Shown here piece after piece: positions 15,201 through 21,200 of a stretch of DNA of 64,000 nucleotides; position 1 is the first letter of the stretch, and every line of letters begins with the position of its first letter. Below the pieces are notes generated by a model that searched no databases, was not told the DNA's origin, and saw only the letters and a list, made by a program, of their open reading frames with translations. This DNA comes from Octopus sinensis (taxonomy: Eukaryota): positions 79,360,001-79,424,000 of the forward strand of contig NC_043000.1 of the NCBI RefSeq assembly GCF_006345805.1, in the 5' to 3' direction. The translations under genes and the position numbers were made by a program.

Positions 15201-18200
15201 CTTGTACTATATTCTTTAAAGACAGTTGTTATTTTCATGCCATTTCAGGAAAACTACTTCTCCAGTACTGTTCTGACCTCATCTACAGAATTCATATTTT
15301 TTTCTGTCCAAATGATTTTGAAGACTGCAGAATAAATGATAATCAGATGGAGCATAGTTTCCCCATTGAAACTGCTCCAGCCTATGGAATGTCATCCTTG
15401 CTGTTCGTGGCCGAGCATTATCCTGATGGAAGAACATCTTTCGTCTTGAAACCAAAGATGGTTGTTTTGATTCTAGCGCTGATTTAAGTTGCTCGCAGTA
15501 GATCTCCTTTGTTATCATTTGGTTTAGCTTTAAAAGTCCAAAGTGGACTAAACCTTTCATATCCTATCAAACAGATACCAACACCATACATGGGTGAAGA
15601 TCTTCTTTAGCCTGGGGTGCTGGTATTTCTCCTTCTGCTCCCCACTGACTTCAGCACTTGACATTTTTATAGAGAACTCATTTCTCGCCACCAGTCCCTA
15701 TTTGGTCCAAAAAAAGGTTCATTCGTGAGATGTGAGAGCAAAGAAGAGCACACATTCACTCTCTGCGTGCGATTAATCTTGGAAAGTTTGTGAGGAACCT
15801 ATTCACCCAATTTTCTGACTTTTCCGATGGCACACAGTTGTCAAAGAATGGTTGAATGATCAAATCCAAGCTTCTCAGCTAGTTCCTCGACAGTTATAAT
15901 GGGATTTCGTTCCACCAGGGTTTGCAGGATGGGCACTGTCATGCCTTTGGGTGTCAGAAGTGAAAGTAGAGAAATCTGACGTCAGACGTCAACTTCGTGT
16001 ATTTATGTCGTCTTTCGTTTATTTACGCCGTTTATTTACGTACCACTGAAATGCAAGTAAAAGCTTGTATGTATGTATGTATGTATGTATATATATATAC
16101 ATACATACACACATATATATAATATACATGTATATATACATATATATATATATATTTAATACATACATATATATAATATATACATGTATTTTTACCGCCT
16201 TTAGTCACACAAATCGACCCCAGAACTTATTCTATCGGTCTTTTTTCTTAACCACTATACATTATATACATACATACAGATAGATAGATAGATACACACA
16301 CACACATATAATAGATATAAAATGTGTACGTGTGTACATTTTTCAGAAAAAATTCATACATTTTAAATATCAATAGCATTTCTCTTATTTTTTACATGAA
16401 GTTTTCGAAAAATGAATTTAGAATGTAAAAATCAAATATATCAAATTAATAAACGCAAATTATTTAGAATGTAAAAATCAAATATATCAAATTAATAAAC
16501 GCAAATTATTTTCAAATATCATTTTCAATGGTGAGATTATCAAAATATAAACTTGAAGTTAAGTTTAAAAATAAATGCGATACTCATTCTGTCTTGATAC
16601 TTATGCTCAAATACATGGATATAGCTGTCGAATTTGTTCTATCAACTTCCCGAATATATCATCCTTAAATTCATAGCGCCACATGAATTCGATGAGATGG
16701 GTCTGAAGTAAATTTCTGGCTGTTCCACATTCTCTCCTATTTCGAGTCTTTACGTGTTTCCATAAACATTCTATGTGGTTGGTTGTGGCAAATGTTACCG
16801 GATCAACAAAATTTATAGAATGATTCACGGTCAAATGTCTGTATCCTAGCTGACTGAGTGTATTATACGAACGCCAAAGGTCGGATATTATTGTTGTACC
16901 AGGCAATATACGCTCGCGTATAATCTGTAATAGAGTGTCCGCTGTTCGATTTTCAACTGCCACTAAAATACATCTTCTACTATCTCTTTCTAATGCACCA
17001 AACACCCATTGCGTTTTAACCCGATGGCCAACATGATATTTTCTCTTAACAAACGCAGTTTCATCTATTTCAACGATTCTATTGGGTCCTCCCAGTTTAA
17101 TATTCTGTGCAACATAATATTCTGCACATACATCGCGGCAAAAATTCCTCCAATCGGTTACCGCTACATTTGCTAAATGACATTCCTGTCCTATTCCTTT
17201 TGCTAAATCTTCTTTGGCCCAGTAAAACAAAATATCTATGATCTGTTGACACTTCAATTTGCTATTTTCTAAAAATGTTCCTTTTCTAATTGACACGGAT
17301 TTTCTACATGGTCTTCCACACGACCATATTATTTCATCAGATATACTTTTTTTCGTTACTTCTCTCATGGTAGCTCCACACGATGTACATATTTTCTGGG
17401 TATTCAAAAGGCCATGTCTCTTAAGCCAATTAATGCTATCTGCTGTTGTAGCAGTGGAGACGGCAATATCGCAGTGACTAATTCCTCTTAAACTTGGATA
17501 TGCAAAAGCCATATTAAAAATTGTTTAGCACGTGTTGATATCACACTGAAAGTTTCTAACTGAATAAATTTCAAAGTTTGATTTACGCACGTGGTGGTCA
17601 GTGGTCATTCTGATTGGTGTATGTAATTGCGGTGATGGTCATGGGGGTTCATTTGTGCAGATTTTGGTGTGATTTCTTTTTTAAAAACAATAATGAATAA
17701 TGCAAGAATAAATATATTCTTGCATTATTCATTATAGGAGAGAATGTGGAACAGCCAGAAATTTACTTCAGACCCATCTCATCGAATTCATGTGGCGCTA
17801 TGAATTTAAGGATGATATATTCGGGAAGTTGATAGAACAAATTCGACAGCTATATCCATGTATTTGAGCATAAGTATCAAGACAGAATGAGTATCGCATT
17901 TATTTTTAAACTTAACTTCAAGTTTATATTTTGATAATCTCACCGTTGAAAATGATATTTGAAAATAATTTGCGTTTATTAATTTGATATATTTGATTTT
18001 TACATTCTAAATAATTTGCGTTTATTAATTTGATATATTTGATTTTTACATTCTAAATTCATTTTTCGAAAACTTCATGTAAAAAATAAGAGAAATGCTA
18101 TTGATATTTAAAATGTATGAATTTTTTTCTGAAAAATGTACACACGTACACATTTTATATCTATTATATGTGTGTGTGTGTATCTATCTATCTATCTGTA

Positions 18201-21200
18201 TGTATGTATATAATGTATAGTGGTTAAGAAAAAAGACCGATAGAATAAGTTCTGGGGTCGATTTGTGCGACTAAAGGCGGTAAAAATACATGTATATATT
18301 ATATATATGTATGTATTAAATATATATATATATATGTATATATACATGTATATTATATATATGTGTGTATGTATGTATATATATATACATACATACATAC
18401 ATACATACAAGCTTTTACTTGCATTTCAGTGGTACGTAAATAAACGGCGTAAATAAACGAAAGACGACGTAAATACACGAAGTTGACGTCTGACGTCAGA
18501 TTTCTCTACTTTCACTTCTGACACCCAAAGGCATGACAGTGCCGCAGGATGTCCTCTACAGATCTTTCAGGATGAGTCTCATCTTCTAGGCTGTAGTTTC
18601 TGGCTTGGAATTTCTGGAACCGATACTGGCTTATGCTTATTGTCCGATCCCCATATACTGCATTAATATTCCTCACACTTTCTGCTGTGTTGTTGCTTTT
18701 ATTGAACTCAAAAAGCAAAATATGCTGGATATGCTCTTTTGTCACTTCCATTATAGCTTTGAAAAAATAACTGTTAAAATCGAACTGCACAAGGTAAACT
18801 TACAACCTGCTTTTATAGCAAGTTGATGCAGGTAGTTTATACCATCCCTTTCCAACTTTTAATATATACAACTGAAAAAAAAAAAAACAGCATTATTTAT
18901 GGGTTGACTCATTACATCTAATTCCTGTTATACCCAGCTTTTCTCTCAACACATTTGTACTATGTTGTCCATGCACACTTACATCCAGTTGAGCATGCTG
19001 GCTTCATTTCTTTCCAGTTTTCTCAGGTCCTCTGTGTTTAAGGTCCATATCTCACTGCTATGCAGCATAATAGTTCCAACACAAGAGTCATGCAATATCC
19101 TATTCACTCTGAGGGAAGAGACCTTTGTTGTCAGCAGTATTAGTAGTTTTTCCAACCTGTTCTTATTCTGATTACTATATTTTCACTACAATCACCTCTC
19201 CTACTAAATACATCTAGATAATGAGAGCTATCAAATATTTCTGCCGAGCCATACAGGCATCTAAGAGATTCTATTCCTAGTGTGCTCAAAGTATATATTG
19301 CTCCAGTGCATTTATCACATATGAAATTTATATTCTGTTAGTTTGCCTGTAATTCCACCACAGTTCTGGTGTGTTCAGAGTTTACATTGGATACAATGTA
19401 TGGAGTTTATGCCTTTTCTCTATCTGCATATTGAGCAAGTCTATTTCCCTGAAGATACTAGTGTCCTATCTTCTTTTCTACTTGCTTAAACCTTTGTTAC
19501 TGCCAAGTTTACCTTAAGACCTCTCGATTCTAAGTTTATCTTCCATGCATGCAAATATGTACTCACATATACATCCGTATTATGAATTTTTTCATTTCCT
19601 AGTAATATTTAAATGAAAGAAAGAAATTGATGCAAGAAAATTTTTTTACCTGGAGAAGCTTGTGGTGAACCTGATGGGGAATGGACCCCTGAGCTTAAAG
19701 AGGATTGTTGTAGATGAGGAGGAACATAGGACATGATTTCATTCTCACATAAGCTAAACAAACAAGTAAAGAAACAAATATTTGTAGACATTTAAAATGA
19801 CATTTAGCAAAAAGTATATAGAGATGGTAATTATATTACAACTAACAATGAAAATGAATGTAGTACAAAGTTATTCAAATTTATTATATATTTCATAATT
19901 TAAGAAGGCAGTTTAATGATGTTCATGCAGATGATAAATGAACTCCAATTATCAAAAACTGATTCTGGTACCAAACTGTGGTGATGAATGAAGAGATATG
20001 TTGTAGAGTAGAACAATAAAATCATAGGGAAATATATTTCAAAATAACACTCTGGCTGTGAATTTAAGGTGCTGGACTAATTGATTACATAGAAACAGCT
20101 GTTGTTTGTGCTGCTGGGAGGGACAATAATTCTACTTGCTACAGAAAACCAGGCTGACAAATAGCTTTCACAACTATTTCTCAAATTAGTAGTTAACAGT
20201 ATGGAGAGTCACTAATGTTGACTCAAATAACATTGAATGCTCATATTTGCAAAAAAAGAAAATAAACAAATACTCATAATAACATGGTATAACCGATATA
20301 AAACAGTAAAAAAAAACCCCAACAAAAATGAATAATGAAGCGAATCTCTCTCTATATAAACGGCAGTTTGTCTGTCTGTGTGTCTGTCAGGTTGTACCCT
20401 CACCCTGACCACGGCTTTCAACCGATTCTGATGAAACTTAACACACACATAGCCCAATGTCATAATTCAAAACTAACACAGCGAAAATTTTGAAAAGTTC
20501 CCCCAGTTCTGAAAAAAAGTGATAAATTCGACATGGGGTCGAGAATCTAAGCTTTTTATTTGCAACACATTTACTGTTGTAGTTTTCGCAACTTGCAATT
20601 GATTTTCACCAAACTCATGGTGAAGCTTAATGTTACCCTAAGAAACTTAATTCTGACGTTAGTTTTCCATGCAATACCTTACCATCAGAAAAAATCGATA
20701 AAATCATGTCATTTTGGGAAATCGCGTTCAAATTCAAGATGACATATTTTCGACAATATCTTTCACAAATTGGCAGGAATTTTTTAAAATTCACAGCGAG
20801 CATCATGTCTACTCCAGGGGCTTTTACATACCCGGGCAATGCCGGGCTATGCTGCTAGTTTTTTTTATAAATTGGTTGTATCTGCTTCTTTTAATTTCCA
20901 GTGAAACCCACAAAACGAAACTAGTGATATTTCTCTAGGTGAGAGATAAATCATTCTCTTGAGAGGATGATGGTCTATTGTAGACAGTTTCTATCATAGC
21001 AAGAACTGAATTCCTCAGTGAATGATGAAATGTCAATGAAAGTCTTACAGATTACAAGAGAAGATGGAATGTTATGACAAGAATAGAATTGATTATGTTA
21101 GCTCAATAGGGCTGGCCTGTGATTAAACAGCATCAAATTATAGCTAGATAGACTAAGCCATTTAGAATTAAGTGTTTATACCCTACAACAACAAGGTGCA

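Follow-up and report, generated by a model that had tools for sequence, protein, structure and literature searches.

A young Merlin transposon of Octopus sinensis with near-identical 810-bp inverted arms that contain the end of its transposase gene

How does a cut-and-paste transposon come to carry the end of its own transposase gene a second time, inverted, at its opposite end? The question is raised by an element of the Merlin superfamily, which is reportedly due to Feschotte in 2004, that lies at positions 15932–18543 of a 64,000-nucleotide stretch of the Octopus sinensis genome (positions 79,360,001 to 79,424,000 of the forward strand of contig NC_043000.1, assembly GCF_006345805.1; hereafter the window, whose numbering is used throughout). 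Merlins are eukaryotic DNA transposons and kin of the bacterial IS1016/IS1595 family, with published terminal inverted repeats (TIRs) of 24–462 bp (PMC8101967). The element described here is a structurally intact Merlin cut-and-paste transposon with an IS1595/IS1016-related DDE transposase, young and lodged inside an old mariner, and its arms have probably grown by repeated copying from one arm to the other.

Anatomy of the element and its host site

Repeat search and global alignment define two inverted arms, 15932–16740 (809 nt) and 17734–18543 (810 nt), which are 99.5% identical over their full length and differ by three substitutions (16006/18469, 16207/18268 and 16529/17945) and one indel, an extra A in an A-run of the right arm near 18128. 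Their complementarity ends sharply at 16741/17733, leaving a single-copy middle of 993 bp, and 62% of the length of the element sits in near-identical arms. An 810-bp inverted repeat of this identity is far beyond chance. Each of the three substitutions pairs a CpG of the right arm with TpG or CpA in the left, and because the closest relative (L001, described below) also has CpG at two of the three sites, the left arm is the mutated one. The element tips are of the GG..CC type (GGCACTGTCATGCC...GGCATGACAGTGCC), and a perfect 8-bp target-site duplication (TSD), GCAGGATG, stands on either side of the unit. A preliminary description of the locus had read by eye the arm coordinates, the three CpG to TpG or CpA differences, the homopolymer indel, a unique middle of about 1 kb and the perfect TSD, all of which are reproduced here. 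A search of the 64-kb window for further copies of the element gives microsatellite matches only, and the TIR core is present at the two tips only. The arrangement of one element nested inside another, which would require four tips, is thereby ruled out.

The open reading frame (ORF) of the element encodes a 301-residue transposase that aligns end to end with distant relatives. Its sole Pfam match is to DDE_Tnp_IS1595 (PF12762, ISXO2-like; E 1.4e-18, 67.8 bits with a cutoff of 27, residues 147–280), and the catalytic residues D150 (EIDET), D211 (ISDLW) and E248 (TNHIEC) fall in invariant or near-invariant columns of an alignment with 12 relatives. Residue 258 spans the arm boundary, and the last 44 codons and the stop codon fall inside the arm, as had been proposed earlier together with the integrity of the gene. 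Upstream, the 5' untranslated region (5'UTR, 17513–17707) is collinear with positions 5796–6000 of L001 and partly 91% identical to a second relative, L003. The assignment to Merlin made in the preliminary description holds on the IS1595-type DDE domain with its D/D/E residues, the 5'-GG starts of the TIRs and the 8-bp TSD; GG..CC tips are also seen in the relatives L001, L002, L003 and L004. The element departs from the descriptive Merlin standard of TIRs of 24–462 bp without ORF overlap, having arms of 809 and 810 bp with 44 codons and the stop inside, and it has neither the THAP P-type transposase nor the 7-bp TSD of the P superfamily and Galileo proper. With a DDE transposase, perfect tips and an 8-bp TSD, it would be expected to move by cut-and-paste transposition.

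The host sequence is a decayed mariner-like element, split by the Merlin. When its flanks are joined with one copy of the TSD (15932–18551 removed), they give one continuous mariner-like frame with an HTH_48 Mos1 domain, in agreement with the uninterrupted host frame reported earlier. The observed/expected ratio of CpG is 0.40 for the whole window, against 0.92 for the unique part of the element and 1.3–1.5 for its arms (0.92–1.47 over the element). Only three of the 23 CpGs in the arms show decay, so the element is recent in a CpG-eroding genome and its arms have been homogenised very recently. Recent arrival or horizontal transfer of the element is possible. The proteins closest to the transposase are from O. 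sinensis (91% identity, partial) and O. bimaculoides (80%), and 46 dispersed-repeat matches are common to the window and these loci. The octopus relatives found are all defective, through a premature stop, insertion of a miniature inverted-repeat transposable element (MITE) or deletions, and the window element is the sole intact copy among the octopus Merlin genes found. Recorded proteins include no exact match to the window transposase ORF or to protein P0004; a scan of metagenome contigs with the TIR core gave no matches, and a protein-based scan of metagenome contigs returned 65 Merlin loci, none above 62% identity to the window transposase.

Native ends of the family and the inner 5' junction

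The comparison of native ends rests on L001, a complete O. sinensis relative (contig VCDQ01004827, 5577–7645, TSD AAACAAAG) that is the closest to the window element with 91% nucleotide identity in the 5'UTR and ORF, and on the more diverged L003 (72% nucleotide identity), whose 5' end is scrambled. L001 is the sole complete native element; L002, from O. bimaculoides, is truncated at its 5' end, L005 and L006 were excluded for their repeat-rich flanks without clear TIRs, and the 65 metagenome Merlin loci were used solely as a reference set for the lengths of TIRs and their overlap with ORFs.

The TIRs of L001 consist of a tip module (5581–5629 and 7595–7643, 71% complementary) and an inner module (5736–5786 and 7386–7436, 86% complementary) that begins about 5 nt past the stop codon. 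The inner module on the 5' side directly adjoins AACTTTATAAATAAATATATTCTTGCATTATTCATTATTG, after which comes the 5'UTR, with no copy of the ORF tail. L001 and L003 have in common the native order CTGTTTAAACTTTATAAATAAATATATTCTTGCATT, and the 5' side of each runs from the 5' tip through a short inner module to the 5'UTR, again without an inverted ORF tail. The family thus appears natively to have bipartite imperfect TIRs of about 215–265 bp, with an inner module ending a few bases from the stop. Because this order is shared by L001 and the more diverged L003, the ORF-tail arrangement of the window is derived. The preliminary description had inferred as much, and had asked whether all family members might have ORF-overlapping TIRs; L001 and L003 have none. 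Across about 12 relatives with recognisable TIRs, these range from 21 to 1406 nt and the sole ORF overlap is one of 9 nt, in L021, while the TIR of L012 stops 3 nt from the ORF end.

L001 also contains a 472-bp MITE (L001:6778–7249) that is of Merlin type, with GG..CC tips, a perfect 44-bp TIR and an 8-bp TSD. It sits in the transposase ORF about 3 nt from the point that matches the inner boundary of the window arm, and in L003 a related MITE is found immediately beyond the limits of the element (L003:7190–7605). Excision of a MITE was considered as a trigger of the rearrangement and rejected: the window has no footprint, the L001 insertion looks recent, and the coincidence has an a priori chance of about 10 in 2000 and was noticed post hoc. 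The L001 Merlin is itself nested in another short inverted-repeat element (5415–5456 and 7710–7751), and related repeats are present in L003 (7625–7890).

A further feature of the window element is the junction at the inner edge of its 5' arm, which reads, in gene orientation, ...CCACATTCTCTCCT[AT]AATGAATAATGCAAGAATATATT[TAT]TCTTGCATTATTCATTATTGTTTTT... and has a short filler that separates the 5'UTR from the ORF-tail copy. The 28 nt of this filler, ATAATGAATAATGCAAGAATATATTTAT, are the exact reverse complement of the native ATAAATATATTCTTGCATTATTCATTAT of L001 and L003, and 10 bases of that native sequence survive in the window solely as the inverted copy. The filler is joined to the ORF-tail copy via AT and to the direct 5'UTR via TAT, microhomologies of 2–3 nt, and the resulting junction palindrome has a computed fold of -19.8 kcal/mol (z -10.6). 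Two successive switches at 2–3-nt microhomologies with a short snap-back would be a signature of template switching, during repair or replication. A repair mechanism may be read from the sequence here because the arms have diverged by only 0.4%, close relatives retain native ends and the 28-nt filler is templated. The junction agrees with the aberrant gap repair that has been invoked for internally rearranged cut-and-paste elements (PMC4168063).

Mosaic arms and their possible origin

In both arms the outer ~115 nt are 87% identical to the 5' end of L001, and they also match 5' fragments of L003. Both window tips carry the 5'-end-specific CGTCAACTTCGTGTATTTACGTC...GTTTATTTACGTACCAC, and a motif search places CGTCAACTTCGTGTATTTACGTC upstream of the ORF only in L001 and L003. 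The 3' ends of these two relatives share a different subterminal sequence, GTGACGTCA...CGTCCAYCTTCGTTTSTTTCCGTA.AATTT.TCAAATTA, and the 3'-end-specific CGTCCAYCTTCGTTTSTTTCCGTA is absent from the whole window with up to three mismatches allowed. The inner ~330 nt of each arm are 3'-derived: arm positions 504–810 match the 3'UTR and ORF tail of L001 and carry 3'-specific sequence, and the part closest to the stop (16512–16606) includes the inner TIR module, of which the relatives have an inverted copy on their 5' side as well. Within the 3'-derived stretch, the outer part holds a tandem duplication of a 46-bp unit that occurs once in the L001 3'UTR and 2.1 times in both window arms. Between tip and tandem unit lies a segment of about 370 bp (module M) that is in neither end of L001 or L003, yet in both window arms, and its dispersed-repeat fragment has at least seven matches in the L001 flanks. 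A putative remnant of the 5'-side inner module (TAAAAGCTTG, 16058–16067) gave no convincing alignment and is not relied on.

Because the tips of both arms are of 5' type and the inner parts of 3' type, the arms are mosaics of several inter-arm transfers. Judged from the relatives, the element has a 'head' at either tip and a 'tail' in the inner third of either arm, for which at least two transfers in opposite directions are needed; the pattern is what repeated inter-arm conversion, in either direction, would leave. We also note that each tip has two overlapping palindromes resembling cAMP response elements (TGACGTCA; 15975–15992 and 18483–18500), a motif kept in the ends of L001 and L003, which could be a site bound by the transposase or by a host factor.

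We consider it probable that this is a young intact Merlin whose arms grew by repeated inter-arm copying. In such a course of events, a 5'-type tip would have been copied onto the 3' end, the insert of microsatellites and repeat fragment and the 46-bp tandem duplication would have spread to both arms, and the 3'UTR with the last 44 codons would have been copied, inverted, onto the 5' side. The copying tract may then have overrun the end of homology and come back via two microhomology-mediated template switches, of the kind that may arise in aberrant post-excision gap repair and in replication-fork switching. The outcome would be a foldback-like element that keeps its promoter region, full transposase gene and perfect tips. 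Since the native 5'UTR is retained, normal mRNA would be expected from the element's own promoter; read-through from outside would yield a hairpin RNA of about 810 bp, a likely trigger of silencing; and because the ORF tail is in both arms, recombination between them would flip the centre and leave the gene unbroken.

Several points weigh against this course of events. The analysis covers a single copy of this architecture, whose movement in its present form can only be presumed; the arms could instead have been homogenised on the spot, once the element had inserted; the two-arm structure is read from assembled sequence, in which a misassembly is a formal possibility; the call of 5' and 3' type depends on two relatives, one of them (L003) with a scrambled 5' end; and the order of events is inferred. 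The further proposal that such Merlins form a lineage able to transpose, with coding sequence embedded in the two TIRs and 5'-type tips on either side, is a tentative one.

The account that competes best with growth in a mobile element, and that we hold to be possible though doubtful, is a private rearrangement, in which a normal Merlin inserted here and its arms were later homogenised and extended in place by conversion or template switching, as a dead end. Closely spaced long inverted repeats attract conversion (PMC3573991), no second copy was found in the window or in the collections scanned, and the TSD outlasts conversion and so does not discriminate. Several transfers and the spread of an insert would, however, all have to be fitted into the brief period that the undecayed CpGs indicate, and at one and the same locus, and the extended-TIR copies of Galileo, which are multi-copy, do transpose (PMC4168063).

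The single event put forward in the preliminary description, in which the whole native 5' end was replaced by an inverted 3' end to give an element with two 3' ends, is improbable as a whole, although part of it stands. The ORF-tail copy is derived, a 3' origin is clear for the 3'UTR and ORF tail that make up the inner third of each arm, the arms are 99.5% identical throughout, and the sole asymmetric junction lies on the 5' side. The two-tailed model does not fit the outer ~115 nt of both arms, which are of 5' type (87% identical to L001) and lack the 3'-end motif of L001 and L003. Such a model presupposes a parental element in which conversion of the 3' tip to 5' type had come first, and this would count as a second event.

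Two explanations remain that are very unlikely. Long ORF-overlapping TIRs could be normal for the lineage, with L001 and L003 as deletion derivatives, given that related Merlins reach very long TIRs (1406 nt at 95.9% identity in L004), that a TIR can come to the ORF end or overlap it by a few bases (L012, +3 nt; L021, -9 nt) and that the native inner module of L001 already lies about 5 nt after the stop, but L001 and the much more diverged L003 share a 5' order without the ORF tail, 10 nt of native sequence are retained in the window only inverted inside the filler, and the ~12 relatives with recognisable TIRs overlap their ORFs by 9 nt at most. A foldback chimera or mis-join during assembly has equally little to commend it, for although inverted duplications are a known class of artefact and one of the four inter-arm differences is a homopolymer length, both arms stop exactly at the 8-bp TSD with the mariner frame resuming across the site, every other difference is a CpG transition, two of the three having their ancestral state confirmed by L001, and the inner junction is no plain fold point, holding instead a 28-nt templated inverted piece.

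Table 1. Coordinates of the Merlin element, its parts and its host element in the window, with the evidence for each.
Feature	Position	Strand	Evidence
Decayed mariner-like host element, split by the Merlin	15279..18790	-	ORFs, joined-flank translation, Pfam
TSD, left copy, GCAGGATG	15924..15931	.	Sequence and alignment
Arm A, 3' side of transposase gene, 809 nt, tip to inside on +	15932..16740	+	Repeat search, alignment
Tip module, ~115 nt, GG terminus, two TGACGTCA palindromes, CGTTTATTTACG subterminal repeats, 5'-end type	15932..16046	+	Alignment, motif search, TRF
Module M: TA/TATG/GATA/CA microsatellites, ~65-bp dispersed-repeat fragment, ~115-bp unique stretch	16047..16415	+	Repeat comparison
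46-bp unit, 2.1 perfect tandem copies	16416..16511	+	Repeat search
Stop-proximal 3'UTR, 3'-end type, includes inner TIR module	16512..16606	-	Comparison with relatives, alignment
Merlin transposase ORF, 301 aa, full length, D150/D211/E248	16607..17512	-	ORF list, Pfam, alignment
Last 44 codons and stop of transposase, within arm A	16607..16740	-	ORF list, alignment
Native 5'UTR and presumed promoter, single-copy	17513..17707	-	Comparison with L001 and L003
Palindrome of filler and direct 5'UTR copy, 21-bp stem, 4-nt loop	17690..17735	.	Repeat search, folding
Filler, 28-nt inverted copy of native 5'UTR segment ATAAATATATTCTTGCATTATTCATTAT	17708..17735	+	Alignment with relatives
Arm B, 5' side of transposase gene, 810 nt	17734..18543	-	Repeat search, alignment
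Inverted duplicate of last 44 codons and stop	17734..17867	+	Sequence, alignment
46-bp tandem unit, mirror in arm B	17963..18058		
Module M, mirror in arm B	18059..18428		
Tip module, mirror in arm B	18429..18543		
TSD, right copy, GCAGGATG	18544..18551	.	Sequence and alignment

Other long-armed elements and the surroundings of the locus

Growth of TIRs is known from Galileo, a member of the P superfamily in Drosophila, in which three modes of extension have been described: tandem repeats, recruitment of internal sequence and secondary inserts in both TIRs; between 69 and more than 500 bp of the ORF end have been recruited in this way, a process called unique to Galileo (PMC4168063, PMC3573991). 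All three modes have a counterpart in the window, where the ORF end (16607–16740) is duplicated at 17734–17867, a copy for which L001 and L003 have no counterpart on their 5' side, the 46-bp unit is expanded from one copy in L001 to 2.1 in both arms, and module M is in both arms and absent from the ends of the two relatives. The elements also share a long-armed, foldback-like look. They differ in the transposase (IS1595-type DDE versus THAP/P-type), in the TSD (8 versus 7 bp), in the host (mollusc versus fly) and in abundance, there being one known copy of the window type and hundreds of Galileo. The likeness is convergent.

The element resembles published Merlins in its 5'-GG TIR starts, 8-bp TSD and animal host, and differs from them in having TIRs of 810 bp rather than 24–462 bp that are 99.5% identical and include 44 transposase codons, and in its mosaic arms with microsatellites, a foreign repeat fragment and a tandem duplication. 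The published range is not a real limit, because the arms of L004 reach 1406 nt. This Merlin relative (ENA ERZ26052449, contig ctg77104, L004:47–5326; protein P0010, 47% protein identity) has arms that are 95.9% identical over the 1406 nt aligned; they include tandem repeats of 213 bp, and (ATAC)n/(TGTA)n microsatellites lie at their inner edges. It shares with the window element the protein clade, the GG..CC tips and kilobase-scale arms with tandem repeats and a tetranucleotide microsatellite; in contrast, its arms stay outside the ORF, the 3' arm beginning 42 nt past the stop codon.

The compact relative L021 has an 88-bp TIR (1507–1594 and 2473–2560) whose inner end includes the last three codons on the 3' side, the third being the stop TAA, and a probable start codon on the 5' side. 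As in the window, the stop and last codons are thus inside the 3' inverted repeat, but in L021 the overlap is of 9 nt in a compact native design, and in the window it is a secondary coding duplication of 135 nt. An ORF end within a terminal repeat is common among bacterial IS elements. The preliminary description had taken Merlin TIRs to be usually of tens to a few hundred base pairs and clear of the ORF, a background that is out of date in view of the 1.4-kb TIRs of L004 and the 9-nt overlap in L021.

Like Drosophila Foldback (FB) and other long-TIR elements, the window element has most of its length in inverted arms, with a potential for hairpin or cruciform formation and for inter-arm recombination. 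In FB the arms are for the most part built of short tandem repeats, and a coding centre is missing from most copies. In contrast, the window element has arms in which unique sequence predominates, with an intact transposase gene between them.

The novelty is therefore modest, long TIRs alone being not unique among Merlins and growth of the repeats into the ORF having previously been described only for Galileo. The window element is a second, independent case of TIRs that grow inward over the end of the transposase gene, outside Drosophila and the P superfamily. It is also a candidate active element for cephalopod genomics, going by its intact parts, and a test case of whether Merlin transposases tell their two ends apart. 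Should a transposition-competent lineage exist, TIR growth in the manner of Galileo would be a general convergent property of cut-and-paste transposons, and the Merlin transposase would be able to use two identical 'head' ends. The value is confined to transposon biology, and all of it rests on a single copy.

The window as a whole is very rich in transposons. Remains of other elements lie at 8684–9931 (-), 38460–40250 (+), 12230–12655 (-), 60877–61272 (+) and 63211–63720 (+), and include reverse transcriptase, an APE-type endonuclease of a long interspersed nuclear element (LINE), a piggyBac-type DDE fragment and Tc1-type transposase fragments. A Pro/Ser-rich frame of 745 residues with low complexity and no Pfam match (46491–48728, -) may be a large host exon. 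At 50824–53513 (+), three successive ORFs have PIF1 helicase domains (E 2.4e-66), suggesting a Helitron-like element.

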